This document shows, in pieces, positions 14,672-58,806 of a stretch of DNA of 64,000 nt. Position 1 is the first letter of the stretch. Each line of letters starts with the position of its first letter. The translations under genes and the position numbers were made by a program. The notes under the pieces are model-generated. The model ran no database searches. It was given only the letters and a program-made list of their open reading frames with translations, and was not told the origin of the DNA. Source of the stretch: Epithemia pelagica (lineage: Eukaryota; Protista; Bacillariophyta); the NCBI GenBank assembly GCA_946965045.2, contig OX337228.1:930001-994000 (forward strand). The letters run 5' to 3'.

Positions 14672-16080
14672 TGGCACAAAACAACAACAACCAAAATAAT
14701 AGCCCCTCGTGTCAACAGGAGCAACATCTGCAACATCATCCGGACAGTACAGTGGCCATGGAATCCTTTACCGCAACGATCAAGTTCTCCAACAAAGTAC
14801 CGCCGGAACCTTGCGCAGATTACAGTTCACCTTGAGCAGCAGTGAGAACTTGCGGTCTCGATTCTATGCTGCCGTTGCTTCCCAACAACAATTATCGCTT
14901 GAACAAGCACACAACGAAGCTGTGTTACTTCATGAAGAACAAGAACGGCAGCTGCAAAGACAGAATCAAGAAGCTATCCGTGTAAGGCAGGCTGGCAATG
15001 ACTGACGAAAGCGAAGAACGATGAATCTGTCTGCCGCAGCTCGATGGGATCACTCCATGAACCTGAAGGTACGACGGTTGTTATACAGAGCACAAAACAC
15101 TACGAGTTTATATGAAGCAAGGGGATTGTGTTCGTCGATTTAAACGAAGAACTTTCTCGACAAATTACCCTTTGAGCAAGTCGGTCAAAACAATCATTCC
15201 GATACCTCCATTGGAGCAGAGTTACCAGCAACATTTATGAATCACACACATTGATTATGATCGGCAAAAAATGTATTTTAATTTGTTGATTCGTATTCAT
15301 GTTGAGACTGCAGGCGGGAAATCAAGTCATAGCCTCCACGTATGACCTTTCACTGTATAGTACATAGAAATAATTCTATGCAAAGACATAAAAACGTGTA
15401 CTTCTGAGTCAACGCAACGCACTGAAACATCTTCGATAGCACTCATTCGTTGACATTCCGGTAACTCAAAGTATTGGCCGTTTCGTGGACTCCCGTAGTA
15501 CGACGATTATGCCACTATGAACTACCTAGGTAGAGTATATGAAAGCATTACATGGAGTGTGCAAAGGCTAAGTGGGAAATAAATCTCAAAACAGAAACGA
15601 CGTCTCCAACATGAGAATCCAAGTTACGAACATATCAAAGATATCCGTACCATTCATATCAGATTGGTTGACTGCGCCAACGTGGGAACCCCAGTTGCTC
15701 CCATTTGTTTTGTTCGATTTGAATCTTCAAAGGACATTACATTGCCACATCAACTACCTATGTGTATTGTGTACACAGACCATTTAAAATATTATTATGC
15801 ATCTTTTCTGATGAAGATAATACGACTTAAGCAACTGATATTCTTGGTGAATAGGGCGTCTTTTTTCACGCTATCACAGCTACCGTAGCATTCATGAACT
15901 TCTTTTTCTTCTTTTTGCTCTTTGCACTCTTTGCACTCTTTGCACTCTTGGCCGTTTTAGTTTTTAGTCTTTGAAACTTTTCCACTCTTTTCACTCTTTT
16001 CACTCTTTTTACTCTTTTTACTCTTTTCACTCTTTTCACTCTTTTCACTCTTTTTACTCTTTTTACTCTTTTCACTCTTT

Positions 16081-19000
16081 TCACTCTTTCTTCTTACTCT
16101 TCTTACTCTTCTTACTCTTCTTACTCTTCTTACTCTTCTTACTCTTTTTGCTTGTACTACTCTCCGCAGCCGGCGGAACACCAGCGGTGGGTTCGTCACT
16201 TCTTGACGGAGATTGGGTTGGCTGTGTTGTCGGAACGGCAGTCGGAGCGGCCGTAGGGACACTAGTTGGTGCACTTGTTGGAACCAAAGTGGGAGAAGAC
16301 GTTGGGGCCGTAGGACTTCCTGTAGGACTTGACGTTGGGGCTGTTGGATTGGACGTTGGTTGTGCCGTTGGTGCACTTGTCGGCTGTGAAGTGGGGCCGC
16401 TTGTTGGTGCAGCCGTCGGGGCTGTCGTAGGACCGAAGGTTGGTTGACTAGTCGGACCCGCAGTTGGTCCACTTGTAGGTCCACTTGTTGGTGCAGATGT
16501 TGGAGCTGACGTTGGTCCGGCGGTAGGACCAGATGTTGGACCAGATGTGGGTCCATGTGTTGGAGTACTCGTTGGTGATGAAGTTGGCTCGCTGGTCGGC
16601 GACGATGTTGGTCCACTTGTCGGACTGTTTGTTGGTCCACTTGTAGGTCCCGAAGTCGGAGCTGACGTTGGTCCTGCGGTAGGACCAGATGTTGGACCAG
16701 ATGTGGGTTCATCTGTGGGAGTACTCGTAGGTGATGAAGTTGGTTCGCTGGTCGGCGACGATGTTGGTCCACTTGTTGGTCCACTTGTCGGACTGCTTGT
16801 CGGACCACTTGTAGGTCCCGATGTCGGAGCTGACGTTGGGCCGGCGGTCGGGGCAGATGTTGGACCAGATGTGGGTCCATCTGTGGGAGTATTTGTTGGA
16901 GATGAAGTTGGTTCGCTGGTCGGCGATGATGTTGGTCCACTTGTCGGACTGCTTGTCGGACGACTTGTAGGTCCCGATGTCGGAGCTGACGTTGGTCCGT
17001 CGGTAGGACCAGATGTTGGACCAGATGTGGGTTCATCTGTGGGAGTACTCGTTGGTGATGAAGTTGGTTCGCTGGTCGGCGACGATGTTGGTCCACTTGT
17101 TGGTCCACTTGTCGGACTGCTTGTCGGACTGCTTGTCGGACCACTTGTAGGTCCCGATGTCGGAGCTGACGTTGGGCCGGCGGTCGGGGCAGATGTTGGA
17201 CCAGATGTGGGTTCATCTGTGGGAGTACTCGTTGGTGATGAAGTTGGCTCGCTGGTCGGCGACGATGTTGGTCCACTTGTTGGTCCACTTGTCGGACTGC
17301 TTGTTGGTCCACTTGTAGGTCCCGATGTCGGAGCTGACGTTGGGCCGGCGGTCGGGGCAGATGTTGGACCAGATGTGGGTTCATCTGTTGGAGTACTCGT
17401 TGGTGATGAAGTTGGCTCGCTGGTCGGCGACGATGTTGGCAATGATGTTGGTGCACTTGTCGGACTGCTTGTTGGTCCACTTGTAGGTGACGAAGTCTTT
17501 GGAACTTTTCCACTCTTTTCACTCTTTTCACTCTTTTCACTCTTTTCACTCTTTTCACTCTTTTTGCTTGTACTACTCTCCGCAGCCGGCGGAACACCAG
17601 GGGTGGGTTCGTCAGTACTACTTGACGGAGATTGGGTTGACTGTGTTGTCGGAACGGCAGTCGGAGCGGCCGTAGGGTTACTCTTCTTACTCTTCTTACT
17701 CTTCTTACTCTTTTTGCTTGTACTACTCTCCGCAGTCGGCGGAACACCAGGGGTGGGTTCGTCAGTACTACTTGACGGAGATTGGGTTGGCTCTGTTGTC
17801 GGAACGGCAGTCGGAGCGGCCGTAGGGACACTAGTTGGTCCACTTGTTGGTGCACTCGTTGGTTGACTTGTGGGTGTCGATGTTGGAGCAGACGTTGGGC
17901 CATCAGTCGGAGCAGATGTGGGACCATCAGTCGGTTGGGTTGTCGGAGCGGATGTTGGGCCATCTGTGGGAGCAGATGTGGGACTTGTAGTAGGCTCTGT
18001 TGTCGGAGCTGATGTGGGAGCAGATGTGGGACCAGCGGTTGGTTCTGATGTCGGAGCGGATGTTGGGCCGGCTGTCGGAGCTGATGTGGGACCATCAGTT
18101 GGTTCTGCTGTTGGAGTACTCGTTGGGGTTTCCGTAGGCTCACTGGTCGGCAACGATGTTGGTGATGACGTTGGTGCACTTGTCGGACTGCTCGTCGGAT
18201 TTTCAGTCGGCTCAGTTGTAGGACCACTCGTAGGTGAGCTCGTTGGTTGACTGGTTGGTGTTGATGTGGGAGCGTTCGTCGGGCCGTCTGTGGGACTTGC
18301 AGTGGGATTGTCAGTGGGATTGTCAGTTGGCTGTGATGTGGGAGTACTCGTGGGTGTTTCAGTGGGCTCACTGGTAGGGGTGGACGTAGGTTGACTGGTC
18401 GGAGGTGTGGTGGGACCGACCGTGGGTTGATTAGTGGGATTGTTCGTGGGCGCAGATGTCGGGGTCGATGTGGGATTGTCGGTAGGTCCACTTGTTGGTG
18501 CAGATGTTGGTCCGGCGGTAGGACCAGATGTTGGACCAGATGTGGGTCCATCTGTTGGAGTACTCGTTGGTGATGAAGTTGGCTCGCTGGTCGGCGACGA
18601 TGTTGGTCCACTTGTTGGTCCACTTGTCGGACTGCTTGTTGGTCCACTTGTTGGTGCACTCGTTGGTTGACTTGTGGGTTTCCTGTGGGAAAAGACGTTT
18701 CCTGTGGGAGAAGACGTTGGGGCTGTAGGACTTCCTGTAGGACTTGACGTTGGGGCTGTTGGATTGGACGTTGGTTGTGCCGTTGGTGCACTTGTTGGCT
18801 GTGAAGTCGGGCTGCTTGTTGGTCCCGCAGTCGGAGCTGTCGTCGGACCATTCGTTGGTGCACTTGTGGGCGCTGAGGTAGGACTGTTTGTTGGTGTCGC
18901 CGTCGGAGCTGTAGTTGGACCTGCTGTTGGCTGACTTGTCGGACCCGCAGTTGGTGCACTTGTTGGTGCACTCGTTGGTTGACTTGTGGGTGTCGATGTT

Positions 19001-22000
19001 GGAGCAGACGTTGGGCCATCAGTCGGAGCAGATGTGGGACCATGAGTCGGTTGGGTTGTCGGAGCGGATGTTGGGCCATCTGTGGGAGCAGATGTGGGAC
19101 TTGCAGTAGGCTCTGTTGTCGGAGCTGATGTGGGAGCAGATGTGGGACCAGCGGTTGGTTCTGATGTCGGAGCGGATGTTGGGCCGGCTGTCGGAGCTGA
19201 TGTGGGACCATCAGTTGGTTCTGCTGTTGGAGTACTCGTTGGGGTTTCCGTAGGCTCACTGGTCGGCAACGATGTTGGTGATGACGTTGGTGCACTTGTC
19301 GGACTGCTCGTCGGATTTTCAGTCGGCTCAGTTGTAGGACCACTCGTAGGTGAGCTCGTTGGTTGACTGGTTGGTGTTGATGTGGGAGCGTTCGTCGGGC
19401 CGTCTGTGGGACTTGCAGTGGGATTGTCAGTGGGATTGTCAGTTGGCTGTGATGTGGGAGTACTCGTGGGTGTTTCAGTGGGCTCACTGGTAGGGGTGGA
19501 CGTAGGTTGACTGGTCGGAGGTGTGGTGGGACCGGCCGTGGGTTGATTAGTGGGATTGTTCGTGGGCGCAGATGTCGGGGTCGATGTGGGATTGTCGGTA
19601 GGTCCACTTGTTGGTGCAGATGTTGGTCCGGCGGTAGGACCAGATGTTGGACCAGATGTGGGTCCATCTGTTGGAGTACTCGTTGGTGATGAAGTTGGCT
19701 CGCTGGTCGGCGACGATGTTGGTCCACTTGTTGGTCCACTTGTCGGACTGCTTGTTGGTCCACTTGTAGGTCCCGATGTCGGAGCTGACGTTGGGCCGGC
19801 TGTCGGTGCTGACGTAGGGGCTGTTGGGCTTCCTGTGGGAGAAGACGTTGGGGCTGTAGGACTTCCTGTAGGACTTGACGTTGGGGCTGTTGGATTGGAC
19901 GTTGGTTGTGCCGTTGGTGCACTTGTTGGCTGTGAAGTCGGGCTGCTTGTTGGTCCCGCAGTCGGAGCTGTCGTCGGACCATTCGTTGGTGCACTTGTGG
20001 GCGCTGAGGTAGGACTGTTTGTTGGTGTCGCCGTCGGAGCTGTAGTTGGACCTGCTGTTGGCTGACTTGTCGGACCCGCAGTTGGTGCACTTGTTGGTGC
20101 ACTCGTTGGTTGACTTGTGGGTGTCGATGTTGGAGCAGACGTTGGGCCATCAGTCGGAGCAGATGTGGGACCATCAGTCGGTTGGGTTGTCGGAGCGGAT
20201 GTTGGGCCATCTGTGGGAGCAGATGTGGGACTTGTAGTAGGCTCTGTTGTCGGAGCTGATGTGGGAGCAGATGTGGGACCAGCGGTTGGTTCTGATGTCG
20301 GAGCGGATGTTGGGCCGGCTGTCGGAGCTGATGTGGGACCATCAGTTGGTTCTGCTGTTGGAGTACTCGTTGGGGTTTCCGTAGGCTCACTGGTCGGCAA
20401 CGATGTTGGTGATGACGTCGGTGCACTTGTCGGACTGCTCGTCGGATTTTCAGTCGGCTCAGTTGTAGGACCACTCGTAGGTGAGCTCGTTGGTTGACTG
20501 GTTGGTGTTGATGTGGGAGCGTTCGTCGGGCCGTCTGTGGGACTTGCAGTGGGATTGTCAGTGGGATTGTCAGTTGGCTGTGATGTGGGAGTACTCGTGG
20601 GTGTTTCAGTGGGCTCACTGGTAGGGGTGGACGTAGGTTGACTGGTCGGAGGTGTGGTGGGACCGGCCGTGGGTTGATTAGTGGGATTGTTCGTGGGCGC
20701 AGATGTCGGGGTCGATGTGGGATTGTCGGTAGGTCCACTTGTTGGTGCAGATGTTGGTCCGGCGGTAGGACCAGATGTTGGACCAGATGTGGGTCCATCT
20801 GTTGGAGTACTCGTTGGTGATGAAGTTGGCTCGCTGGTCGGCGACGATGTTGGTCCACTTGTTGGTCCACTTGTCGGACTGCTTGTTGGTCCACTTGTAG
20901 GTCCCGATGTCGGAGCTGACGTTGGGCCGGCTGTCGGTGCTGACGTAGGGGCTGTTGGGCTTCCTGTGGGAGAAGACGTTGGGGCTGTAGGACTTCCTGT
21001 AGGACTTGACGTTGGGGCTGTTGGATTGGACGTTGGTTGTGCCGTTGGTGCACTTGTTGGCTGTGAAGTCGGGCTGCTTGTTGGTCCCGCAGTCGGAGCT
21101 GTCGTCGGACCATTCGTTGGTGCACTTGTGGGCGCTGAGGTAGGACTGTTTGTTGGTGTCGCCGTCGGAGCTGTAGTGGGACCTGCTGTTGGCTGACTTG
21201 TCGGACCCGCAGTTGGTGCACTTGTTGGTGCACTCGTTGGTTGACTTGTGGGTGTCGATGTTGGAGCAGACGTTGGGCCATCAGTCGGAGCAGATGTGGG
21301 ACCATGAGTCGGTTGGGTTGTCGGAGCGGATGTTGGGCCATCTGTGGGAGCAGATGTGGGACTTGTAGTAGGCTCTGTTGTCGGAGCTGATGTGGGAGCA
21401 GATGTGGGACCAGCGGTTGGTTCTGATGTCGGAGCGGATGTTGGGCCGGCTGTCGGAGCTGATGTGGGACCATCAGTTGGTTCTGCTGTTGGAGTACTCG
21501 TTGGGGTTTCCGTAGGCTCACTGGTCGGCAACGATGTTGGTGATGACGTTGGTGCACTTGTCGGACTGCTCGTCGGATTTTCAGTCGGCTCAGTTGTAGG
21601 ACCACTCGTAGGTGAGCTCGTTGGTTGACTGGTTGGTGTTGATGTGGGAGCGTTCGTCGGGCCGTCTGTGGGACTTGCAGTGGGATTGTCAGTGGGATTG
21701 TCAGTTGGCTGTGATGTGGGAGTACTCGTGGGTGTTTCAGTGGGCTCACTGGTAGGGGTGGACGTAGGTTGACTGGTCGGAGGTGTGGTGGGACCGGCCG
21801 TGGGTTGATTAGTGGGATTGTTCGTGGGCGCAGATGTCGGGGTCGATGTGGGATTGTCGGTTGGTGCGTCCGTGGGCTGACTTGTGGGACTGCTGGCCGG
21901 ATCATTGAGTCGTCGGCGGGAAACACCCGATCGCAAATGCCCCCCGACATCGGTCGAGTCGGTGTTTTCTCGGTCGTCATCGTACGGAACGCGTTTGGAA

Positions 22001-22446
22001 AGATTCGAATTCGTGATTGGTGGTTTGAACGGGTTCGTATCATCCTGGTGCGATGAATGGGATGTTTGGTCTTTTCCGGACCACAAGGATGACCAAAAAC
22101 CTTGAAGACTGGAAGCTGACTTTGTCACAGACGTGGGATGTTCAGTTGTGTTATGAGAACTATTGTCCTCAGCAGTCTTGGTTGTCACATTCATGTTGCA
22201 TGGGTCGGCTTCGTTGCAGCTCGTCGTCGTTTTACTTTCCTTCAACAACATAGCGTCGGAAGGTACGGGAGGAGTGGGCGTTGGAGAAGCCGGGGACGAC
22301 AAGGAGACGACAGGTTCTTTTCGTCTGTCTGGGTTGGTGGACTTGGCAAAACTGGTTCCACACAGAAGCTGTACAACAAGGAGTGCGTGGAGAAAGCGGG
22401 TCCCCCGTTTCCCCATAGTGGCAATTCTACAGGAGGAGGACACCAT
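16081..22446 (-). CDS. Secreted Pro/Thr/Ser-rich (xPTx repeat) mucin-like protein with Lys-Ser blocks, paralog 1, 2121 aa
   Basis: Signal peptide (FLHALLVVQLLCGTSFA), a propeptide ending RRRL, about 1900 aa of tetrapeptide repeats organised in 377-aa (1131-nt) units, and (SKK)n and (SEK)n blocks. The frame is open throughout. Confidence 0.9.
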   Translation of the reverse strand: MVSSSCRIATMGKRGTRFLHALLVVQLLCGTSFAKSTNPDRRKEPVVSLSSPASPTPTPPVPSDAMLLKESKTTTSCNEADPCNMNVTTKTAEDNSSHNTTEHPTSVTKSASSLQGFWSSLWSGKDQTSHSSHQDDTNPFKPPITNSNLSKRVPYDDDRENTDSTDVGGHLRSGVSRRRLNDPASSPTSQPTDAPTDNPTSTPTSAPTNNPTNQPTAGPTTPPTSQPTSTPTSEPTETPTSTPTSQPTDNPTDNPTASPTDGPTNAPTSTPTSQPTSSPTSGPTTEPTENPTSSPTSAPTSSPTSLPTSEPTETPTSTPTAEPTDGPTSAPTAGPTSAPTSEPTAGPTSAPTSAPTTEPTTSPTSAPTDGPTSAPTTQPTHGPTSAPTDGPTSAPTSTPTSQPTSAPTSAPTAGPTSQPTAGPTTAPTATPTNSPTSAPTSAPTNGPTTAPTAGPTSSPTSQPTSAPTAQPTSNPTAPTSSPTGSPTAPTSSPTGSPTAPTSAPTAGPTSAPTSGPTSGPTSSPTSGPTSGPTSSPTSEPTSSPTSTPTDGPTSGPTSGPTAGPTSAPTSGPTDNPTSTPTSAPTNNPTNQPTAGPTTPPTSQPTSTPTSEPTETPTSTPTSQPTDNPTDNPTASPTDGPTNAPTSTPTSQPTSSPTSGPTTEPTENPTSSPTSAPTSSPTSLPTSEPTETPTSTPTAEPTDGPTSAPTAGPTSAPTSEPTAGPTSAPTSAPTTEPTTSPTSAPTDGPTSAPTTQPTDGPTSAPTDGPTSAPTSTPTSQPTSAPTSAPTAGPTSQPTAGPTTAPTATPTNSPTSAPTSAPTNGPTTAPTAGPTSSPTSQPTSAPTAQPTSNPTAPTSSPTGSPTAPTSSPTGSPTAPTSAPTAGPTSAPTSGPTSGPTSSPTSGPTSGPTSSPTSEPTSSPTSTPTDGPTSGPTSGPTAGPTSAPTSGPTDNPTSTPTSAPTNNPTNQPTAGPTTPPTSQPTSTPTSEPTETPTSTPTSQPTDNPTDNPTASPTDGPTNAPTSTPTSQPTSSPTSGPTTEPTENPTSSPTSAPTSSPTSLPTSEPTETPTSTPTAEPTDGPTSAPTAGPTSAPTSEPTAGPTSAPTSAPTTEPTASPTSAPTDGPTSAPTTQPTHGPTSAPTDGPTSAPTSTPTSQPTSAPTSAPTAGPTSQPTAGPTTAPTATPTNSPTSAPTSAPTNGPTTAPTAGPTSSPTSQPTSAPTAQPTSNPTAPTSSPTGSPTAPTSSPTGNVFSHRKPTSQPTSAPTSGPTSSPTSGPTSGPTSSPTSEPTSSPTSTPTDGPTSGPTSGPTAGPTSAPTSGPTDNPTSTPTSAPTNNPTNQPTVGPTTPPTSQPTSTPTSEPTETPTSTPTSQPTDNPTDNPTASPTDGPTNAPTSTPTSQPTSSPTSGPTTEPTENPTSSPTSAPTSSPTSLPTSEPTETPTSTPTAEPTDGPTSAPTAGPTSAPTSEPTAGPTSAPTSAPTTEPTTSPTSAPTDGPTSAPTTQPTDGPTSAPTDGPTSAPTSTPTSQPTSAPTSGPTSVPTAAPTAVPTTEPTQSPSSSTDEPTPGVPPTAESSTSKKSKKSKKSKKSNPTAAPTAVPTTQSTQSPSSSTDEPTPGVPPAAESSTSKKSEKSEKSEKSEKSEKSGKVPKTSSPTSGPTSSPTSAPTSLPTSSPTSEPTSSPTSTPTDEPTSGPTSAPTAGPTSAPTSGPTSGPTSSPTSGPTSGPTSSPTSEPTSSPTSTPTDEPTSGPTSAPTAGPTSAPTSGPTSGPTSSPTSSPTSGPTSGPTSSPTSEPTSSPTSTPTDEPTSGPTSGPTDGPTSAPTSGPTSRPTSSPTSGPTSSPTSEPTSSPTNTPTDGPTSGPTSAPTAGPTSAPTSGPTSGPTSSPTSGPTSGPTSSPTSEPTSSPTSTPTDEPTSGPTSGPTAGPTSAPTSGPTSGPTNSPTSGPTSSPTSEPTSSPTSTPTHGPTSGPTSGPTAGPTSAPTSAPTSGPTSGPTAGPTSQPTFGPTTAPTAAPTSGPTSQPTSAPTAQPTSNPTAPTSSPTGSPTAPTSSPTLVPTSAPTSVPTAAPTAVPTTQPTQSPSRSDEPTAGVPPAAESSTSKKSKKSKKSKKSKKSKKSKKKE

Positions 22447-29701: not shown

Positions 29702-31619
29702 TCAATGTCATCCGTCTCACTCTCACCCTTCGCTGTCGACTATGCACCAGATGGCAGCAGCTGCCGTTTGTTCCCCAGAATGGGACCACCGGGTGAGGGG
29801 AATGGAGAATTTTCTGTAGAACCATAACCGACAAATCTGTGTATCCTCTCAGACACGTTCGGTCCGTATGGCCCATATTTTGATCTTTTTGGAGTCTTGA
29901 CTGTCTTGACAATGCCCCTGTCCAAAGAATGGATTGCCACCTATACCAGACAATCCGAGCTATGGCGAGTCCTTTGTCTATTGGAACCCTTCAAAGCTCA
30001 AGTCGAAGAAGATCCGAATGAAGAATCGAGCAGCAGTGACGAATCCATGTTTTCGGGTGTAATGGCCGAGTCCGAGTTGCGACTGCGGTATGGAAAGTTT
30101 CGGCTTTTGTATTCGTCCTTTATCCGTTGCATGCGATATTTGGCTCGAATCAAGGACGATGCTTTGAGTGGACGACAACCGTCCATGATTGACTATGGAA
30201 CCAGTGGAGCCGAAACCTCGTCACACAGTCATCGCAACATTTCGTGCAATCAAAATCTTCAAGACTTTTTGGTAGGGCACGAGGTGTAGTGGCACAAAAC
30301 AACAACAACCAAAATAATAGCCCCTCGTGTCAACAGGAGCAACATCTGCAACATCATCCGGACAGTACAGTGGCCATGGAATCCTTTACCGCAACGATCA
30401 AGTTCTCCAACAAAGTACCGCCGGAACCTTGCGCAGATTACAGTTCACCTTGAGCAGCAGTGAGAACTTGCGGTCTCGATTCTATGCTGCCGTTGCTTCC
30501 CAACAACAATTATCGCTTGAACAAGCACACAACGAAGCTGTGTTACTTCATGAAGAACAAGAACGGCAGCTGCAAAGACAGAATCAAGAAGCTATCCGTG
30601 TAAGGCAGGCTGGCAATGACTGACGAAAGCGAAGAACGATGAATCTGTCTGCCGCAGCTCGATGGGATCACTCCATGAACCTGAAGGTACGACGGTTGTT
30701 ATACAGAGCACAAAACACTACGAGTTTATATGAAGCAAGGGGATTGTGTTCGTCGATTTAAACGAAGAACTTTCTCGACAAATTACCCTTTGAGCAAGTC
30801 GGTCAAAACAATCATTCCGATACCTCCATTGGAGCAGAGTTACCAGCAACATTTATGAATCACACACATTGATTATGATCGGCAAAAAATGTATTTTAAT
30901 TTGTTGATTCGTATTTATGTTGAGACTGCAGGCGGGAAATCAAGTCATAGCCTCCACGTATGACCTTTCACTGTATAGTACATAGAAATAATTCTATGCA
31001 AAGACATAAAAGAGAATACTTCTGGGACGCACAGAAACATATTCGATAGCACTTATTCGTTGACATTCCGGTAACTCAAAGTATTGGCCGTTTCGTGAAC
31101 TCCCGTAGTACAACGATTATGCCCCTATGAACTACCTAGAGTATAAGAAAGCATTTCATGGAATGTGCAAAGGCTGAGTGGGAAATAAATCTCAAAACAG
31201 AAACGACGTCTCCAACATGAGAATCCAAGTTACGAACATATCAAAGATATCCGTACCACACATATCAGATTGGTTGACTGCGCCAACGTGGGAACCCCAG
31301 TTGCTCCCATTTGTTTTGTTCGATTTGAATATTCAAAGGACATTACATTGCCACATCAACTACCTATGTGTATTGTGTACACAGACCATTTAAAATATTA
31401 TTATGCATCTTTTCTGATGAAGATAATACGACTAAAGCAACTGATATTCTTGGTGAATAGGGCGTCTTTTTTCACGCTATCACAGCTACCGTAGCATTCA
31501 TGAACTTCTTTTTCTTCTTTTTGCTCTTTGCACTCTTTGCACTCTTTGCACTCTTTGCACTCTTTTCACTCTTTTTACTCTTTTCACTCTTTTCACTCTT
31601 TGTACTCTTTTCACTCTTT

Positions 31620-34600
31620 TCACTCTTTCTTCTTACTCTTCTTACTCTTCTTACTCTTCTTACTCTTCTTACTCTTTTTGCTTGTACTACTCTCCGCAAC
31701 CGGCGGAACACCAGCGGTGGGTTCGTCACTTCTTGACGGAGATTGGGTTGGCTGTGTTGTCGGAACGGCAGTCGGAGCGGCCGTAGGGACACTAGTTGGT
31801 GCACTTGTTGGAACCAAAGTGGGAGAAGACGTTGGGGCTGTAGGACTTCCTGTAGGACTTGACGTTGGGGCTGTTGGATTGGACGTTGGTTGTGCCGTTG
31901 GTGCACTTGTTGGCTGTGAAGTGGGGCCGCTTGTTGGTGCAGCCGTCGGGGCTGTCGTAGGACCGGAGGTTGGTTGACTAGTCGGACCCGCAGTTGGTCC
32001 ACTTGTAGGTCCACTTGTTGGTGCAGATGTTGGAGCTGACGTTGGTCCGGCGGTAGGACCAGATGTTGGACCAGATGTGGGTCCATCTGTTGGAGTACTC
32101 GTTGGTGATGAAGTTGGCTCGCTGGTCGGCGACGATGTTGGTCCACTTGTCGGACTGTTTGTTGGTCCACTTGTAGGTCCCGAAGTCGGAGCTGACGTTG
32201 GTCCTGCGGTAGGACCAGATGTTGGACCAGATGTGGGTTCATCTGTGGGAGTACTCGTTGGTGATGAAGTTGGTTCGCTGGTCGGCGACGATGTTGGTCC
32301 ACTTGTTGGTCCACTTGTCGGACTGCTTGTCGGACCACTTGTAGGTCCCGATGTCGGAGCTGACGTTGGGTCGGCGGTCGGGGCAAATGTTGGACCAGAT
32401 GTGGGTCCATCTGTGGGAGTATTTGTTGGAGATGAAGTTGGTTCGCTGGTCGGCGACGATGTTGGTCCACTTGTCGGACTGCTTGTCGGACCACTTGTAG
32501 GTCCCGATGTCGGAGCTGACGTTGGTCCTGCGGTAGGACCAGATGTTGGACCAGATGTGGGTTCATCTGTGGGAGTACTCGTTGGTGATGAAGTTGGTTC
32601 GCTGGTCGGCGACGACGTTGGTCCACTTGTTGGTCCACTTGTCGGACTGCTTGTCGGACCACTTGTAGGTCCCGATGTCGGAGCTGACGTTGGGCCGGCG
32701 GTCGGGGCAGATGTTGGACCAGATGTGGGTCCATCTGTGGGAGTATTTGTTGGAGATGAAGTTGGCTCGCTGGTCGGCGACGATGTTGGTCCACTTGTTG
32801 GTCCACTTGTCGGACTGCTTGTTGGTCCACTTGTAGGTCCCGATGTCGGTGCTGACGTTGGGCCGGCGGTCGGGGCAGATGTTGGACCAGATGTGGGTCC
32901 ATCTGTGGGAGTATTTGTTGGAGATGAAGTTGGCTCGCTTGTCGGCGACGATGTTGGTCCACTTGTTGGTCCACTTGTCGGACTGCTTGTTGGTCCACTT
33001 GTAGGTCCCGATGTCGGAGCTGACGTTGGGCCGGCGGTCGGGGCAGATGTTGGACCAGATGTGGGTCCATCTGTGGGAGTATTTGTTGGAGATGAAGTTG
33101 GCTCGCTTGTCGGCGACGATGTTGGTCCACTTGTTGGTCCACTTGTCGGACTGCTTGTTGGTCCACTTGTAGGTCCCGATGTCGGAGCTGACGTTGGGCC
33201 GGCGGTCGGGGCAGATGTTGGACCAGATGTGGGTTCATCTGTTGGAGTACTCGTTGGTGATGAAGTTGGCTCGCTGGTCGGCGACGATGTTGGCAATGAT
33301 GTTGGTGCACTTGTCGGACTGCTTGTTGGTCCACTTGTAGGTGACGAAGTCTTTGGAACTTTTCCACTCTTTTCACTCTTTTCACTCTTTTCACTCTTTT
33401 CACTCTTTTCACTCTTTTCACTCTTTTCACTCTTTTTGCTTGTACTACTCTCCGCAGCCGGCGGAACACCAGGGGTGGGTTCGTCAGTACTACTTGACGG
33501 AGATTGGGTTGACTGTGTTGTCGGAACGGCAGTCGGAGCGGCCGTAGGGTTACTCTTCTTACTCTTCTTACTCTTCTTACTCTTCTTACTCTTTTTGCTT
33601 GTACTACTCTCCGCAGTCGGCGGAACAACAGGGGTGGGTTCGTCAGTACTACTTGACGGAGATTGGGTTGGCTGTGTTGTCGGAACGGCAGTCGGAGCGG
33701 CCGTAGGGACACTAGTTAATCCACTTGTTGGTGCACTCGTTGGTTGACTTGTGGGTGTCGATGTTGGAGCAGACGTTGGGCCATCAGTCGGAGCAGATGT
33801 GGGACCATCAGTCGGTTGGGTTGTCGGAGCGGATGTTGGGCCATCTGTGGGAGCAGATGTGGGACTTGCAGTAGGCTCTGTTGTCGGAGCTGATGTGGGA
33901 GCAGATGTGGGACCAGCGGTTGGTTCTGATGTCGGAGTAGACGTTGGGCCATCAGTCGGAGCAGATGTGGGACCATCAGTCGGTTGGGTTGTCGGAGCGG
34001 ATGTTGGGCCATCTGTGGGAGCAGATGTGGGACTTGCAGTAGGCTCTGTTGTCGGAGCTGATGTGGGAGCAGATGTGGGACCAGCGGTTGGTTCTGATGT
34101 CGGAGCGGATGTTGGGCCGGCTGTCGGAGCTGATGTGGGACCATCAGTTGGTTCTGCTGTTGGAGTACTCGTTGGGGTTTCCGTAGGCTCACTGGTCGGC
34201 AACGATGATGGTGATGACGTCGGTGCACTTGTCGGACTGCTCGTCGGATTTTCAGTCGGCTCAGTTGTAGGACCACTCGTAGGTGAGCTCGTTGGTTGAC
34301 TGGTTGGTGTTGATGTGGGAGCGTTCGTCGGGCCGTCTGTGGGACTTGCAGTGGGATTGTCAGTGGGATTGTCAGTTGGCTGTGATGTGGGAGTACTCGT
34401 GGGTGTTTCAGTGGGCTCACTGGTAGGGGTGGACGTAGGTTGACTGGTCGGAGGTGTGGTGGGACCGGCCGTGGGTTGATTAGTGGGATTGTTCGTGGGC
34501 GCAGATGTCGGGGTCGATGTGGGATCGTCGGTAGGTCCACTTGTTGGTGCAGATGTTGGTCCGGCGGTAGGACCAGATGTTGGACCAGATGTGGGTCCAT

Positions 34601-37600
34601 CTGTGGGAGTACTCGTTGGTGATGAAGTTAGCTCGCTGGTCGGCGACGATGTTGGTCCACTTGTTGGTCCACTTGTCGGACTGCTTGTTGGTCCACTTGT
34701 AGGTCCCGATGTCGGAGCTGACGTTGGGCCGGCTGTCGGTGCTGACGTAGGGGCTGTTGGGCTTCCTGTGGGAGAAGACGTTGGGGCTGTAGGACTTCCT
34801 GTAGGACTTGACGTTGGGGCTGTTGGATTGGACGTTGGTTGTGCCGTTGGTGCACTTGTTGGCTGTGAAGTCGGGCTGCTTGTTGGTCCCGCAGTCGGAG
34901 CTGTCGTCGGACCATTCGTTGGTGCACTTGTGGGCGCTGAGGTAGGACTGTTTGTTGGTGTCGCCGTCGGAGCTGTAGTTGGACCTGCTGTTGGCTGACT
35001 TGTCGGACCCGCAGTTGGTGCACTTGTTGGTGCTCTCGTTGGTTGACTTGTTGGTGTAGATGTTGGAGCAGACGTTGGGCCATCAGTCGGAGCAGATGTG
35101 GGACCATCAGTCGGTTGGGTTGTCGGAGCGGATGTTGGGCCATCTGTGGGAGCAGATGTGGGACTTGCAGTAGGCTCTGTTGTCGGAGCTGATGTGGGAG
35201 CAGATGTGGGATCAGCGGTTGGTTCTGATGTCGGAGCGGATGTTGGGCCGGCTGTCGGAGCTGATGTGGGACCATCAGTTGGTTCTGCTGTTGGAGTACT
35301 CGTTGGGGTTTCCGTAGGCTCACTGGTCGGCAACGATGTTGGTGATGACGTCGGTGCACTTGTCGGACTGCTCGTCGGATTTTCAGTCGGCTCAGTTGTA
35401 GGACCACTCGTAGGTGAGCTCGTTGGTTGACTGGTTGGTGTTGATGTGGGAGCGTTCGTCGGGCCGTCTGTGGGACTTGCAGTGGGATTGTCAGTTGGCT
35501 GTGATGTGGGAGTACTCGTGGGTGTTTCAGTGGGCTCACTGGTAGGGGTGGACGTAGGTTGACTGGTCGGAGGTGTGGTGGGACCGGCCGTGGGTTGATT
35601 AGTGGGATTGTTCGTGGGCGCAGATGTCGGGGTCGATGTGGGATCGTCGGTAGGTCCACTTGTTGGTGCAGATGTTGGTCCGGCGGTAGGACCAGATGTT
35701 GGACCAGATGTGGGTCCATCTGTGGGAGAACTCGTTGGTGATGAAGTTGGCTCGCTGGTCGGCGACGATGTTGGTCCACTTGTTGGTCCACTTGTCGGAC
35801 TGCTTGTTGGTCCACTTGTAGGTCCCGATGTCGGAGCTGACGTTGGGCCGGCTGTCGGTGCTGACGTAGGGGCTGTTGGGCTTCCTGTGGGAGAAGACGT
35901 TGGGGCTGTAGGACTTCCTGTAGGACTTGACGTTGGGGCTGTTGGATTGGACGTTGGTTGTGCCGTTGGTGCACTTGTTGGCTGTGAAGTCGGGCTGCTT
36001 GTTGGTCCCGCAGTCGGAGCTGTCGTCGGACCATTCGTTGGTGCACTTGTGGGCGCTGAGGTAGGACTGTTTGTTGGTGTCGCCGTCGGAGCTGTAGTTG
36101 GACCTGCTGTTGGCTGACTTGTCGGACCCGCAGTTGGTGCACTTGTTGGTGCTCTCGTTGGTTGACTTGTTGGTGTAGATGTTGGAGCAGACGTTGGGCC
36201 ATCAGTCGGAGCAGATGTGGGACCATCAGTCGGTTGGGTTGTCGGAGCGGATGTTGGGCCATCTGTGGGAGCAGATGTGGGACTTGCAGTAGGCTCTGTT
36301 GTCGGAGCTGATGTGGGAGCAGATGTGGGATCAGCGGTTGGTTCTGATGTCGGAGCGGATGTTGGGCCGGCTGTCGGAGCTGATGTGGGACCATCAGTTG
36401 GTTCTGCTGTTGGAGTACTCGTTGGGGTTTCCGTAGGCTCACTGGTCGGCAACGATGTTGGTGATGACGTCGGTGCACTTGTCGGACTGCTCGTCGGATT
36501 TTCAGTCGGCTCAGTTGTAGGACCACTCGTAGGTGAGCTCGTTGGTTGACTGGTTGGTGTTGATGTGGGAGCGTTCGTCGGGCCGTCTGTGGGACTTGCA
36601 GTGGGATTGTCAGTTGGCTGTGATGTGGGAGTACTCGTGGGTGTTTCAGTGGGCTCACTGGTAGGGGTGGACGTAGGTTGACTGGTCGGAGGTGTGGTGG
36701 GACCGGCCGTGGGTTGATTAGTGGGATTGTTCGTGGGCGCAGATGTCGGGGTCGATGTGGGATCGTCGGTAGGTCCACTTGTTGGTGCAGATGTTGGTCC
36801 GGCGGTAGGACCAGATGTTGGACCAGATGTGGGTCCATCTGTGGGAGTACTCGTTGGTGATGAAGTTGGCTCGCTGGTCGGCGACGATGTTGGTCCACTT
36901 GTTGGTCCACTTGTCGGACTGCTTGTTGGTCCACTTGTAGGTCCCGATGTCGGAGCTGACGTTGGGCCGGCTGTCGGTGCTGACGTAGGGGCTGTTGGGC
37001 TTCCTGTGGGAGAAGACGTTGGGGCTGTAGGACTTCCTGTAGGACTTGACGTTGGGGCTGTTGGATTGGACGTTGGTTGTGCCGTTGGTGCACTTGTTGG
37101 CTGTGAAGTCGGGCTGCTTGTTGGTCCCGCAGTCGGAGCTGTCGTCGGACCATTCGTTGGTGCACTTGTGGGCGCTGAGGTAGGACTGTTTGTTGGTGTC
37201 GCCGTCGGAGCTGTAGTTGGACCTGCTGTTGGCTGACTTGTCGGACCCGCAGTTGGTCCACTTGTTGGTGCACTCGTTGGTTGACTTGTTGGTGTAGATG
37301 TTGGAGCAGACGTTGGGCCATCAGTCGGAGCAGATGTGGGACCATCAGTCGGTTGGGTTGTCGGAGCGGATGTTGGGCCATCTGTGGGAGCAGATGTGGG
37401 ACTTGCAGTAGGCTCTGTTGTCGGAGCTGATGTGGGAGCAGATGTGGGATCAGCGGTTGGTTCTGATGTCGGAGCGGATGTTGGGCCGGCTGTCGGAGCT
37501 GATGTGGGACCATCAGTTGGTTCTGCTGTTGGAGTACTCGTTGGGGTTTCCGTAGGCTCACTGGTCGGCAACGATGTTGGTGATGACGTCGGTGCACTTG

Positions 37601-40637: not shown

Positions 40638-40955
40638 GCTACGAGCTCATATTCGTGCTACCTAGTCCAATTCTCCTCGCACTTTTCCAATATTGCCTCC
40701 ATATGGTGGCAATTATTAAATGTTCGAATTCGAGATATTCTCTCGATCGTGGTGTCTTGGCCGGCTTAAGTAAACACTAATCTGAATTTTGTTATTGTAT
40801 TGGGTGCGTCATCGTCCCAATCGTCCTCTGTCGTCGTCAGTCGTACGCGTTACGCGTACGAGGTACGGACGCAGGTCTTACTCCTTGTACGTACGAGGTA
40901 TAAGTAGTACAACTCGTAAGTACGAGTACGTGTACGAGTACGGACCACTGAACTC

Positions 40956-53077: not shown

Positions 53078-53086
53078 GAGAGGGAG
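53078..53086 (+). other. Polypurine tract GAGAGGGAG
   Basis: Purine run abutting the 3' LTR. Confidence 0.8.
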
Positions 53087-53969: not shown

Positions 53970-56900
53970 TCACGCTATCACAGCTACCGTAGCATTCATG
54001 AACTTCTTTTTCTTCTTTTTGCTCTTTGCACTCTTTGCACTCTTTGCACTCTTTTCACTCTTTTCACTCTTTTCACTCTTCTTACTCTTTTCACTCTTCT
54101 TACTCTTTTCACTCTTCTTACTCTTTTCACTCTTCTTACTCTTTTCACTCTTTTTGCTTGTACTGTCGGACTCTTTCCACTCTTTTTACTCTTTCCACCC
54201 TTTCCACTCTTCTTGCTCGTACTACTCTCCGCAGCCGGCGGAACATCAGGGGTGGGTTCGTCAGTACTACTTGACGGAGATTGGGTTGGCTGTGCTGTCG
54301 GAACGGCAGTCGGAGCGGCCGTAGGGACACTAGTTGGTGCACTTGTTGGAACCAAAGTGGGACCGGTAGTAGGGACAGTGGTTGGTTCACGTGTTGGAAT
54401 TGACGTTGGTAAAAGAGTGGGTAGTGCAGTCGGTAGTTCAGTTGGAACATCTGTTGGAGAACTCGTAGGGACTAACGTAGGTTCAGAAGTCGGCTGTGCA
54501 GTAGGAATCCGAGTTGGTAACAAAGTTGGGAAAAGTGTCGGCAAACTAGTGGGAACGGAAGTCGGAACAGAAGTTGGTTCACTTGTGGGCGAATCCGCTC
54601 CGACAGCACCTCCAGTCGGAGAAACACCACTATCAATTGTTGGAGCCGAAGTTGGAGCAGTTGTTGGAGCACTCGTTGGTGTGTCTGTAGGCAAACTAGT
54701 CGGCGCTCCTGTCGGTAATGACGTTGGTGCACTTGTCGGACTACTCGTTGGACTACCTGTAGGACTTGACGTTGGGGCTGTGGGACTACCTGTCGGAGAC
54801 GCTGTTGCTACTTGTTGGAGAAGACGTTGGGGCTGTAGCAGCTGATGTAGAAAGACGTGTAGGGCCCGCAGCTGAACCACTTGTTGGTGCAGATGTCGGA
54901 GCTGACGTTGGGCCGGCGGTAAGACCAGATGTTGGACCAGATGTGGGTTCATCTGTGGGAGTACTCGTTGGTGATGAAGTTGGCTCGCTGGTAGGCGACG
55001 AAGTTGGTCCGCTTGTCGGACTGGTTGTTGGTCCACTTGTAGGTCCCGATGTCGGAGCTGACGTTGGGCCGGCTGTCGGTACTGAAGTTGGGGCTGTTGG
55101 GCTACCTGTTGGAGAAGACGGTGGGGCTATCGGACTTGCTGTAGGACTTAACGTTGGGGCTGTAGAATTGGACGTTGGTTGTGCCGTTGGAGCACTTGTT
55201 GGCTGTGAAGTGGGGCTGCTTGTTGGTTCCGCCGTCGGGGCTGTCGTAGGACCGGAGGTTGGTTGACTAGTCGGACCCGCAGTTAATCCACTTGTAGGTC
55301 CACTTGATGGTGCAGATGTCGTAGCTGACATTGGTCCGGTGGTAGGACCAGATGTTGGACCAGATGTGGGTTCATCTGTGGGACTACTCGTTGGTGACGA
55401 AGTTGGCTCGCCGGTCGGCGACGATGTTGGTCCACTTGTTGGTCCGCTTGTTGGTCCCGATGTCGGAGCTGACGTTGGGCCGGCTGACGGTACTGAAGTT
55501 GGGGCTGTTGGGCTACCTGTTGGAGAAGACGTTGGGGCTGTCGGACTTGCTGTAGGACTTGACGTTGGGGCTCTTGGATTGGACGTTGGTTGTGCCGTTG
55601 GTGCACTTGTTGGCTGTGAAGTGGGGCTGCTTGTTGGTTCCGCCGTCGGGGCTGTCGTAGGACCGGAGGTTGGTTGACTAGTCGGACCCGCAGTTAATCC
55701 ACTTGTAGGTCCACTTGTTGGTGCAGATGTCGTAGCTGACGTTGGTCCGGTGGAAGGACCAGATGTTGGACCAGATGTGGGTTCATCTGTGGGAGTACTC
55801 GTTGGTGATGAAGTTGGCTCGCTGGTCGGCGACGATGTTGGTCCACTTGTTGGTCCACTTGTAGGTCCCGATGTCGGAGCTGACGTTGGGCCGGCTGTCG
55901 GTACTGAAGTTAGGGCTGTTGGGCTACCTGTTGGAGAAGACGGTGGGGCTGTCGGACTTGCTGTAGGACTTGACGTTGGGGCTGTAGAATTGGACGTTGG
56001 TTGTGCCGTTGGAGCACTTGTTGGCTGTGAAGTGGGGCTGCTTGTTGGTTCCGCCGTCGGGACTGTCGTAGGACCGGAGGTTGGTTGACTAGTCGGACCC
56101 GCAGTTGGTCCACTTGTAGGTCCACTTGTTGGTGCAGATGTTGTAGCTGACGTTGGTCCGGTGGTAGGACCAGATGTTGGACCAGATGTGGGTTCATCTG
56201 TGGGAGTACTCGTTGGTGATGAAGTTGGCTCGCTGGTCGGTGACGATGTTGGTCCACTTGTTGGTCCACTTGTAGGTCCCGATGTCGGAGCTGACGTTGG
56301 GCCGGCTGTCGGTACTGAAGTTGGGGCTGTTGGGCTACCTGTTGGAGAAGACGTTGGGGCTATCGGACTTGCTGTAGGACTTGACGTTGGGGCTGTTGGA
56401 TTGGACGTTGGTTGTGCCGTTGGTGCACTTGTTGGCTGTGAAGTGGGGCTGCTTGTTGGTTCCGCCGTCGGGGCTGTCGTAGGACCGGAGGTTGGTTGAC
56501 TAGTCGGACCCGCAGTTAATCCACTTGTAGGTCCACTTGTTGGTGCAGATGTTGTAGCTGACGTTGGTCCGGTGGAAGGACCAGATGTTGGACCAGATGT
56601 GGGTTCATCTGTGGGAGTACTCGTTGGTGATGAAGTTGGCTCGCTGGTCGGTGACGATGTTGGTCCACTTGTTGGTCCACTTGTAGGTCCCGATGTCGGA
56701 GCTGACGTTGGGCCGGCTGTCGGTACTGAAGTTGGGGCTGTTGGGCTACCTGTTGGAGACGACGTTGGGGCTGTCGGACTTGCTGTAGGACTTGACGTTG
56801 GGGCAGTTGGATTGGACGTTGGTGGTGCCGTTGGTGCACTTGTTGGCTGTGAAGTGTGGCTGCTTGTTGGTCCCGCAGTCGGAGCTGTCGTCGGACCATT

Positions 56901-58806
56901 CGTTGATGCACTTGTGGGCGCTGAGGTAGGACTGTTTGTTGGTGTTGCCGTCGGAGCTGTAGTTGGACCGGCTGATGGCTGACTTGTCGGACCCGCAGTT
57001 GGTCCACTTGTTGGTGCACTCGTTGGTTGACTTGTTGGTGTCGATGTTGGAGCTGACGTTGGGCCATCTGTCGGCGCAGATGTGGGACCAGCAGTCGGTT
57101 GTGTTGTCGGAGCTGATGCTGGGGCATCTGTTGGAGCTGCTGTTGGACCTACAGTTGGTGCCGCTGTTGGAGTACTCGTGGGTGTTTCAGTAGGCTCACC
57201 GGTCGGTGATGTTGTTGGTAATGACGTTGGTGCACTTGTCGGACTGCTCGTTGGTCCACTTGTAGGTGACGTTGTCGGAGCTGACGTTGGGCCGGCTGTC
57301 GGAGATGATGTTGGTGCCGTGGGACTGCTCGTTGGAGACGACGTTGGGGCTTTAGGACTTTCTGTAGGACTCGACGTAAGGGCAGTTGGATTCGACGTTG
57401 GTTGTACCGTTGGCGCACTTGTCGGCTGTGAAGTCGGGCTGCTTGTTGGTGCCGCCGTCGGGGCTGTCGTAGGACCATTCGTTGGTGCAGTTGTGGGTGC
57501 TGAGGTAGGACTGTTTGTTGGTGTCGCCGTCGGACCTGCTGTTGGCTGACTCGTTGGACCCGCAGTTGGTGCACTTGTTAGTGCACTCGTTGGTTGACTT
57601 GTGGGTGTGGATGTTGGAGCAGACGTTGGGCCATCTGTCGGAGCAGATGTGGGACCAACAGTCGGTTGGGTTGTCGGAGCGGATGTTGGGCCATCTGTCG
57701 GAGCAAATGTGGGACCAGCAGTAGGCTCTGTTGTCGGAGCTGATGTTGGGCCATTTGTGGGAGCAGATGTGAGACCAGCGGTTGGTTCTGATGTCGGAGC
57801 GGATGTTGGGCCGGCTGTCGGAGCTGATGTGGGACCATCAGTTGGTTCTGCTGTTGGAGTACTCGTTGGGGTTTCCGTAGGCTCACTGGTCGGCAACGAT
57901 GTTGGTGATGACGTCGGTGCACTTGTCGGACTGCTCGTCGGATTTTCAGTCGGCTCAGTTGTAGGACCACTCGTAGGTGAGCTCGTTGGTTGACTGGTTG
58001 GTGTTGATGTGGGAGTGTTCGTCGGGCCGTCTGTGGAACTTGCAGTGGGATTGTCAGTGGGATTGTCAGTTGGCTGTGATGTGGGAGTACTCGTGGGTGT
58101 TTCAGTGGGCTCACTGGTAGGGGTGGACGTAGGTTGACTGGTCAAAGGTGTGGTGGGACCGGCCGTGGGTTGATTAGTGGGATTGTTCGTGGGCGCAGAT
58201 GTCGGGGTCGATGTGGGATTGTCGGTTGGTGCGTCCGTGGGCTGACTTGTGGGACTGTTGGCCGGATCATTGAGTCGTCGGCGGGAAATACCCGGTCGCA
58301 AATGCCCCCCGAGATTGGTCGAGTCGGTTTTTTCTCGGTCGTCATCGTACGGAACGCGTTTGGAAAGATTCGAATTCGTGATTGGTGGTTTCGACGGGTT
58401 CGTATCATCCTGGTGCGATGAATGGGATGTTTGGTCTTTTTCGGACCACAAGGATCCAAAAACCTTGAAGACTGGAAGCTGACTTTGTCACAGACGTGGG
58501 ATGTTCAGTTGTGTTATGAGAACTATTGTCCTCAGCAGTCTTGGTTGTCACATTCATGTTGCATGGGTCGGCTTCGTTGCAGATCGTCGTTTTACTTTCC
58601 TCCAACAACATGGCGTCGGAAGGTACGGGAGGAGTTGGCGTTGGAGGAGGCGGGGACGACAAGGAGACGACATGGTCTTTTCGTCTGTCGGGGTTGGTGG
58701 ACTTGGCAAAACTGGTTCCACACAAGAGCTGTACAACAAGGAGTGCGTGGAGCAAGTGGGTCCCCCGTTTCCCCACAGTAGCAATTCTACAGGAGGAGGA
58801 AACCAT
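53970..58806 (-). pseudogene. Mucin-like paralog 3, diverged, with frameshifts at about 58455, 54807 and 54163
   Basis: Same signal peptide and RRRL. Apparent 2-nt deletions at TGG-[TC]-ATCC and AGC-[CC]-AACA, plus a shift before the Lys block. 137-aa (411-nt) repeat units and many P>L and P>S substitutions. The indels could be consensus errors. Confidence 0.75.

Follow-up and report, generated by a model that had tools for sequence, protein, structure and literature searches.

The window analysed here (a 64-kb stretch of the genome of the diatom Epithemia pelagica, G000:C1:930001-994000, within which the family positions are given) carries on its minus strand three copies, hereafter copies 1-3, of a gene for proteins that combine a long Pro-Thr (PT) tetrapeptide repeat with short lysine blocks. 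Judging from the sequences and from their comparison with published systems, we postulate, with a probability of approximately 0.6, that these genes form part of a lineage-specific family, amplified in recent times, of secreted and disordered "rod plus anchor" proteins, which would serve as a frustule-coat or mucilage fibre. An earlier note on this stretch had described three paralogs of a giant "mucin-silaffin hybrid". The three minus-strand copies indeed share a common N-terminus, but copy 3 is broken by frameshifts and the family comprises six members: a six-frame search of the whole assembly (60.5 Mb, 23 contigs), with the N-terminal 190 amino acids (aa) as the query, revealed six loci and none further, all on contig C1. 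The proteins range from 840 to 4627 aa, and five of the open reading frames (ORFs), which likewise span 840-4627 aa and share the N-terminus, run unbroken from Met to stop in the PT frame.

Rod, pro-region and lysine modules

Most of each protein is a rod of xPTx tetrapeptides, with 464 P[TS] units in copy 1, 597 in copy 2, 1101 in the 4627-aa gene and approximately 150 in each of the two short genes. Successive units lie 4 aa apart in about 95% of cases (441/463, 569/596 and 1028/1100 for copy 1, copy 2 and the 4627-aa gene, respectively), and the longest in-phase runs reach 96 units in copy 1 and 123 units in copy 2, a regularity well in excess of chance; the 1500-2500 aa of xPTx repeats noticed earlier are present in these two copies, but copy 3 is not intact. 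Thr follows Pro in 99% of units. Of the two variable positions, the first is occupied mainly by S (62%), A (12%), D (9%), T (6%) and N (5%), and the second by G (27%), A (21%), S (15%), T (10%), Q (9%) and E (9%). The Pfam model for the PT disordered repeat (PF04886) matches the 843-aa paralogue in 7 stretches at 238.1 bits (E = 3.5e-72; gathering cut-off 26.2 bits) and the C-terminal piece of copy 3 at 47.1 bits; in a scan of the own genome, it also matches copies 1 and 2 and the 4627-aa gene. The tetrapeptides are organised into higher-order units that differ among the paralogs: copies 1 and 2 have units of 372-377 and 52-56 aa, the 4627-aa gene has units of 193 and 361 aa, and in copy 3 the unit measures 137 aa. 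Inside one gene, these units are up to ~99% identical, so that each paralogue has evidently extended its rod independently and recently.

In the rod, each of the four synonymous codons is used for Pro and for Thr, with an entropy of 1.7-1.9 bits at the third position and with codon positions 1-2 fixed; selection has therefore acted on the peptide and not on a DNA satellite or its 12-nt unit. Moreover, the frame that opens with Met and the signal peptide is the one in which the PT repeat is read, and it closes in a defined tail. In-phase PT units have been lost at 22 of 280 places (7.9%, mostly to LT, PS and TT) in copy 3, compared with 0-1.4% in the intact copies. Given this loss, along with at least three frameshifts, copy 3 looks like a pseudogene: alignment of its 5' part with copies 1 and 2 places a 2-bp deletion at 58455/58456, right behind ...SSLQGFW, and the reading frame changes again near 54786-54808 and once more within the lysine tail; in addition, Met11 is replaced by Val.

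The N-terminus common to the three minus-strand paralogs reads MVSSSCRIATMGKRGTRFLHALLVVQLLCGTSFA and is followed by a pro-region with the motif SCNEADPC and by RRRL at aa 177-180; an in-frame stop lies just 5' of Met1 in the paralogs. The start was judged by inspection to be a signal peptide, as a basic n-region (KRGTR) precedes one hydrophobic segment of 11-12 aa and a small-residue c-region (GTSFA). This segment is the sole hydrophobic one of the protein (Kyte-Doolittle 2.3 over 11 aa in copy 1), hence neither a transmembrane helix nor a glycosylphosphatidylinositol (GPI) signal is expected. The pro-region of ~142 aa is near-neutral (18 acidic and 14 basic residues), and each protein contains 4 Cys, all within the first 83 aa; the Cys-pair propeptide described before corresponds to Cys77 and Cys83 in SCNEADPC. 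An AlphaFold2 model of the N-terminus contains only a helix at aa 15-29, with a mean predicted local distance difference test score of 51.9, and fits disorder, although a single-sequence model is weak evidence. The earlier note was also right about the RRRL motif, a candidate RXL-type processing site: there is one, at the boundary between the pro-region and the rod, and it is kept, as is the signal-peptide-like start, in all five intact paralogs. The PT repeat starts five to seven residues past it.

The lysine blocks are introduced by a module, PTAAPTAVPTT.PTQSPS..DEPT.GVPP.AESSTS, that leads to (SKK)4-8, SKK(SEK)5-7SGKVPKT or SKKSGKSKKSAKSAKSAK(K)n. Previously taken as ~35 aa long, the module is in fact ~50 aa, and its transition into (SKK)n or (SEK)n runs could be confirmed; copies 1 and 2 contain three such modules each, the short genes two, and copy 3 and the 4627-aa gene a single one, and across the assembly the module is confined to these six genes. 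The net charge after RRRL is acidic (-70 in copy 1, -104 in copy 2), and on such a backbone the (SKK)n, (SEK)n and SGK/SAK blocks stand out as isolated patches, cationic or zwitterionic, which are the sole strongly charged ones of the protein. Blocks with 5 or more Lys per 14 aa occur in all members, 1-3 in each. The lysines of (SKK)n stand in consecutive pairs, and the (SEK)n and SGK/SAK blocks come closer than (SKK)n to the published definition of a pentalysine cluster (given below). Of the KxxK hallmark of silaffins, which had been invoked for these proteins, the strict pattern K[SG][SG]K is nearly absent, with 0-1 occurrences per intact protein. The lysine content is 0.7-2% in the three giant proteins and 4.0-4.4% in the two short ones.

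The C-terminal tails record a frame change. An in-frame reading to ...KKKKKKFMNATVAVIA* (the asterisk denotes a stop codon) is confined to the 4627-aa gene, and four genes (copy 1, copy 2 and both short genes) end early with ...SKKSKKKE*. All four retain, in other frames, a readable (SEK/SKK)n continuation and the old ...FMNATVAVIA* end, the latter lying at 15866 in copy 1 and at 31472 in copy 2. Position 15866, taken before as the lower bound of the family, is therefore the end of an out-of-frame relic tail, and copy 1 itself stops at 16081-16083. The simplest explanation of the ...KKKE* stop is one inherited 1-nt insertion; an intron or a sequencing error was set aside as less likely, as the same stop is present in four paralogs. 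The lysine runs are perfect 9-nt DNA repeats, the length of which evidently evolves by slippage without tight constraint. We also observed that the in-frame internal ...SEKSGKVPKT of copies 1 and 2 (block K2, 17494-17676 and 33348-33548) matches the out-of-frame relic tail ...SEKSGKVPKTKN* of the short paralogs, which suggests that the long genes may have arisen by unequal recombination fusing the tail of one gene to the rod of another.

The locus and its features

The three minus-strand regions stand out by a GC content of 54-58% and a strong GC and AT skew, and each contains a very long ORF (Table 1). Copies 1 and 2 sit in a ~17-kb tandem segmental repeat whose units are 97-98.7% identical. 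A haplotype mis-join as the origin of copies 1 and 2 was rejected, as three successive repeat units are present and the window is free of N. Two smaller repeats were noticed as well: a 427-bp unit that occurs twice at 41567-42411 (97% identity), and a 58-59-bp tandem repeat at 1431-1559 and 25545-25675 that recurs in each segmental-repeat unit. The Copia-type element between copies 2 and 3 has a 1600-aa ORF with GAG-pre-integrase, integrase SH3-like and RVT_2 domains, preceded by a 530-aa ORF without a Pfam match that is probably gag. No other obvious host genes were seen in the flanks, and co-duplicated enzyme genes were rejected there, only transposon ORFs being present. Plus-strand ORFs across the repeats (e.g., 16547-17866) were rejected as antisense by-products of the repeat composition.

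Table 1. Features of the family and its surroundings, in window coordinates unless given in kb on contig C1.
Feature	Position	Strand	Remarks
Copy 1, intact single-exon ORF, 2121 aa	16081..22446	minus	ORF list and translation
Copy 1 signal-peptide-like N-terminus, aa 1-34	22345..22446	minus	n-region KRGTR, h-region FLHALLVVQLLC, c-region GTSFA
Copy 1 pro-region, aa 35-176	21919..22344	minus	Ser/Thr-rich; Cys77 and Cys83; four N-x-S/T sequons; predicted disordered
Copy 1 RRRL, aa 177-180	21907..21918	minus	candidate RXL/dibasic processing site, pro-region/PT-rod junction
Copy 1 PT rod A, aa 181-1540	17827..21906	minus	xPTx tetrapeptides, ~four higher-order units of 372-377 aa
Copy 1 internal lysine modules K1 and K2	17494..17826	minus	
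Copy 1 K1	17680-17826	minus	ends (SKK)4
Copy 1 K2	17494-17676	minus	ends SKK(SEK)5SGKVPKT
Copy 1 PT rod B, aa 1652-2063	16258..17493	minus	higher-order units of 52-56 aa (156-168 bp)
Copy 1 C-terminal lysine module K3	16084..16257	minus	ends (SKK)7KE
Copy 1 relic tail beyond the stop codon	15866..16080	minus	(SEK/SKK)n...SGKVSKTKN* in one frame, then AKSAKSAKSKKKKKKFMNATVAVIA* in another; reachable from the ORF by two frame changes
Copy 2, intact single-exon ORF, 2657 aa	31620..39593	minus	
Copy 2 signal peptide (by inspection)	39492-39593	minus	
Copy 2 pro-region	39066-39491	minus	
Copy 2 RRRL	39054-39065	minus	
Copy 2 PT rod A	33708..39053	minus	~five higher-order units of 373 aa, DNA ~99% identical among themselves
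Copy 2 internal lysine modules	33348..33707	minus	
Copy 2 K1	33552-33707	minus	ends (SKK)5
Copy 2 K2	33548 downwards	minus	ends SKK(SEK)7SGKVPKT
Copy 2 PT rod B	31788..33347	minus	52-56-aa units
Copy 2 C-terminal lysine module	31623..31787	minus	ends (SKK)6KE
Copy 2 relic tail	31472..31619	minus	one frame change from the ORF; ends ...KKKKKKFMNATVAVIA*
Copy 3, broken paralogue	53970..58806	minus	three overlapping ORF pieces in different frames: 58405-58806, 54786-58451, 53996-55036
Copy 3 lysine module	54170-54325	minus	relic tail ends at 53970
Paralogue, 843 aa	674.7 kb on C1	plus	
Paralogue, 840 aa	686.9 kb on C1	plus	
Paralogue, 4627 aa	883.2-897.1 kb on C1	minus	
Tandem segmental repeat with copies 1 and 2	813-45071		
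Repeat unit 1	~813-24930		interrupted at ~5781-14129
Repeat unit 2	24931-41984		
Repeat unit 3, partial	to ~45071		
piggyBac-like (DDE_Tnp_1_7) transposase ORF in the repeat	3131-5293		
piggyBac-like (DDE_Tnp_1_7) transposase ORF in the repeat	28267-29409		truncated
Copia-type retrotransposon between copies 2 and 3	46534-53019	plus	

Relatives and comparable systems

Outside of the low-complexity rod, the family is an orphan, as far as the libraries searched reveal. The N-terminal 190 aa have no Pfam match, and the PT repeat is the only Pfam domain in a full-length paralogue. For the N-terminal region, a word-index search in two length classes yielded no relative among 5.8 bn clusters, HMMER gave 0 matches at E <= 0.001 among 1.84 bn representatives, and none of the 179 pattern matches in metagenome contigs of the Joint Genome Institute (JGI) was confirmed. 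The lysine-module region gave 0 matches among proteins of 1166-3711 aa, and for the 843-aa paralogue the ESM Atlas gave nothing usable.

The closest structural parallel of the rod is TLP-4, an 8-nm glycofibril of fresh-water origin whose sole protein is a linear tetrapeptide chain; its repeat carries a conserved 3,4-dihydroxyproline with two glycans and an adjacent Ser/Thr with a third one, at a rise of 12.4 Å (PMC11725842). Its authors name diatom PT/Sxx candidates, including the 6077-aa KAG7367681.1 of Nitzschia inconspicua, and suggest a role in adhesion or tethering for diatom PTxx proteins (PMC11725842). Both these proteins and our family are linear Pro-Thr/Ser tetrapeptides with two variable positions, repeated over hundreds of units in a rod free of folded domains, and the sequence traits of the TLP-4 type (a strict four-residue period, Pro followed by Thr/Ser, two poorly conserved positions) were all found in the family. 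In contrast to TLP-4, the family adds the orphan pro-region with RRRL and the polybasic (SKK)n blocks, and its unique sequence could not be aligned to any protein of the libraries searched. Dihydroxyproline was originally discovered in diatoms, and the E. pelagica genome contains at least 28 loci with a prolyl 4-hydroxylase (P4H)-type 2-oxoglutarate (2OG)-oxygenase domain.

Giant proteins rich in proline, threonine and serine (PTS proteins) are also known from the adhesive material of Craspedostauros australis, which contains 17% dihydroxyproline and ~70% carbohydrate (bioRxiv 10.1101/2023.03.06.531300); in its trails such proteins reach ~2 µm (bioRxiv 10.1101/2023.03.06.531300; PMC11420354), and CaFAP1, a mucin-like coat protein of this species, is thought to reduce gliding friction (PMC11420354). 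CaTrailin4, Ca5609 and CaFAP1 resemble the family in being very large, repetitive, Pro/Thr/Ser-rich proteins of a raphid pennate, secreted in their case and predicted to be so in the family, for which O-glycosylation and an extension of 0.2-2 µm are expected. However, the CAA domain (PF20597), the Cys-rich spacers and the conserved raphid-specific C-terminal region of CaTrailin4 and Ca5609 were missing from the family in Pfam, Cys-count and module searches, whereas its lysine blocks are not reported for CaTrailin4/Ca5609 (bioRxiv 10.1101/2023.03.06.531300). The family has a PTS-like domain in common with animal-type mucins, but no Cys-rich domains were found in it (Pfam, Cys count). In gel-forming and other animal mucins, the PTS domains are flanked by vWD, C8, TIL or cystine-knot domains.

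The other end of the protein recalls silaffins. RXL is a processing motif of diatom wall proteins, and Sil1p of C. fusiformis consists of a signal peptide, a pro-region, RRxL and repeats (PMC4557024); lysine clusters target proteins to silica in vivo (PMC4557024; PMC9650480). PT repeats occur in fourteen silaffin-like/KXXK proteins of T. pseudonana, including TpSil1, and tpSil1H contains dihydroxyproline (PMC5501833). Hence, "mucin-silaffin hybrid" is a fair description of the family but not of a new kind of protein, since TpSil1-type proteins already combine such features (PMC5501833). The family shares with TpSil1/2, the SFLPs and Sil1p the pro-region, R-x-L, Lys/Ser clusters and PT repeats and, judging by inspection, a signal-peptide-like start, but its proportions are reversed (>90% PT rod, <5% lysine blocks), its lysines stand in (SKK)n pairs instead of K[SG][SG]K, it has one RXL at the domain boundary and its length is 840-4627 aa. 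The published screen for silaffin-like proteins sought an endoplasmic reticulum (ER) signal peptide, an RXL site, KXXK (X = S/G) 1-6 residues apart and a pentalysine cluster, i.e., five non-consecutive lysines in 12-14 residues (PMC5501833); of these, the family has the RXL site but lacks the repeated KXXK. Because of this mixed outcome and the absence of Trailin, Ca5609 and mucin domains, we file the family neither as a silaffin nor as a Trailin; in its make-up it would probably work like a silaffin-tagged glycofibril. The observation from which we started was thus confirmed in part and its interpretation partly supported: the glycosylated-rod half appears well backed by the composition of the rod and its published parallels, and the silaffin half is plausible by analogy.

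A small relative in design is AC3362 of Amphora coffeaeformis, a Pro/Lys/Thr-rich protein put in the cell wall by a yellow fluorescent protein (YFP) fusion (PMC4220933). AC3362 is secreted, as is predicted for the family, and both have no membrane helix and join a Pro/Thr-rich repeat to lysine-rich repeats, but AC3362 is small and tyrosine-rich, with KG dipeptide repeats. It is more closely resembled by KPT-repeat genes elsewhere in the genome, a tandem array of four ~280-aa genes at G000:C1:1352001-1362000 (minus strand), each with a clear signal peptide, an SGKGKK/GKGKGKG block, (S/A)KPT tetrapeptides and a C-terminal GKGKGG...GKGKKGED block. Secreted-looking genes with (KPTx)n stalks lie at G000:C6:842001-849000, C9:331001-337000 and C2:1711001-1718000; at least one has a KGKGKGKGK block, and they end in a Cys-containing domain with the motif ITGGTGxFxGAxG, which may be dirigent/AOC-like. 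At G000:C5:1863001-1872000, a 684-aa ORF (locus positions 3693-5747) contains a KKKSEKSKSEKSPKSEKS... block immediately ahead of (SQPT)n, a second, unrelated SEK-type block adjoining a PT rod. Of the 398 P[TS] units in a 3548-aa frame on the minus strand of G000:C10:1146001-1176000 (~1153.1-1163.7 kb), 355 keep the four-residue phase; this frame also has a non-repetitive domain at its C-terminus, and neither a lysine cluster nor RXL was found in it. Unrelated PT-repeat genes of the same genome thus also bear lysine blocks, in support of a "stalk plus lysine tag" design as a general feature of this organism.

Possible function and alternative explanations

If the family acts as we postulate, the signal peptide would take the protein into the ER, and the ~142-aa disordered pro-region might be removed at RRRL by the RXL/dibasic endoprotease of wall proteins. 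The prolines of the 150-1100 PTxx units would be converted to hydroxy- or dihydroxyproline and, together with the neighbouring Thr, become heavily O-glycosylated, the result being a stiff bottle-brush glycofibril of the TLP-4 type, approximately 0.19 to 1.4 µm long at 1.24 nm per unit. Fibre length would be set by the number of higher-order repeat units amplified in each paralogue. As can be read directly from the translations, the backbone is net-acidic, with polybasic (SKK)n/(SEK)n/SGK/SAK patches; these lysine blocks could tie the fibre to silica, to the organic coat or to acidic mucilage, either electrostatically or after silaffin-type modification of lysine and serine.

Several observations weigh against this reading. 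A single RXL at the domain boundary implies that no lysine peptides would be released. The strict silaffin-like K[SG][SG]K is nearly missing from the intact proteins; the broken copy 3 has three of them. The lysine tail is frame-changed in 5/6 copies relative to the longest paralogue, so that its length does not seem tightly constrained. Cleavage after ...GTS would put Phe at +1, the residue demanded there by the diatom plastid-targeting motif. The genes are embedded in a transposon-rich, gene-poor stretch, and word-index and HMMER searches with the N-terminus found no entry from the family genes in the protein libraries. ORF length alone is weak evidence for coding because alternative reading frames over the repeat extend up to 2028 aa without a stop. 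Finally, in the N-terminal 190 codons the ratio of non-synonymous to synonymous change (pN/pS) among paralogs is ~0.7-2.2, with only 1-7 synonymous changes, and purifying selection is not visible; this fits a disordered propeptide, but also weak function.

The last points lead to the decidedly unlikely explanation that the family is young and largely non-functional or decaying, shaped by unequal crossing-over and weakly or not expressed, its lysine runs being roleless, slippage-prone microsatellites. A pN/pS of ~1 in the sole non-repetitive region would agree with this, as would the one pseudogene-like copy, the premature ...KKKE* stop common to four copies with the old tail legible out of frame, the perfect 9-nt repeats of the lysine runs, the lack of relatives in the libraries searched and the 97-99% identity of the copies. 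However, synonymous codon diversity combined with invariant Pro-Thr over hundreds of units requires that the peptide has been under selection for a long time. Moreover, up to 13.9 kb has been kept in frame, the broken copy 3 displays how decay looks in this family, and the signal-peptide-like start and RRRL are retained in all intact copies. We consider it unlikely, too, that the protein is a free mucilage or adhesive-trail strand leaving through the raphe or pores, whose lysine blocks cross-link acidic (uronic or sulphated) polysaccharides or grip negative substrata with no frustule targeting. The ~2-µm giant PTS proteins of diatom trails, with 17% dihydroxyproline and ~70% carbohydrate, make such a role conceivable; the family has no membrane anchor, and adhesion or tethering is what the TLP-4 authors proposed for diatom PTxx proteins. 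Yet the CAA domain, Cys-rich spacers and C-terminal region of CaTrailin4/Ca5609 are missing, and published in-vivo data tie lysine clusters to silica targeting.

That targeting, along with a layout parallel to Sil1p, the 1-3 blocks per protein with at least 5 Lys in 14 aa and the presence of PT repeats and dihydroxyproline in TpSil1, might suggest a true silaffin, which enters the silica deposition vesicle, carries polyamine-lysines and phosphoserines and precipitates silica like the high-molecular-mass tpSil1/2H. We find this highly improbable: lysine accounts for only 0.7-2% of the three giants and 4.0-4.4% of the two short proteins, strict KXXK (X = S or G) is nearly absent, and a fibre of 0.2-1.4 µm is hard to imagine within forming silica. 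Silaffins share, to our knowledge, no conserved sequence.

The "rod plus anchor" reading, which we prefer, can be taken further. We speculate, while regarding it as quite unlikely, that the rods are TLP-4-type cores, length-graded at ~0.19, 0.58, 0.74 and 1.4 µm and pinned by polyamine-modified (SKK)n caps as a tunable frustule brush. If so, brush thickness would be tuned by gain or loss of repeat units, and the family would offer a culturable, genetically tractable source of such fibrils and the first lysine-cluster silica anchoring of a glycofibril.

No new principle is involved, as PT repeats, lysine motifs and RXL are already known together from silaffin-like proteins, and giant PTS proteins from raphid diatoms. 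Nevertheless, the family provides clean candidates for the protein that lies at the core of PTxx glycofibrils. If these proteins are made, they would be clean natural PTxx rods, nearly free of other domains, present at five lengths in one genome and provided with a short, separable lysine anchor. They would then be a test case for which proteins form the dihydroxyproline-rich, sugar-coated fibres seen by cryo-electron microscopy (cryo-EM) and in diatom slime, for how such fibres are fixed to silica and for how fast fibre length evolves by unequal crossing-over.

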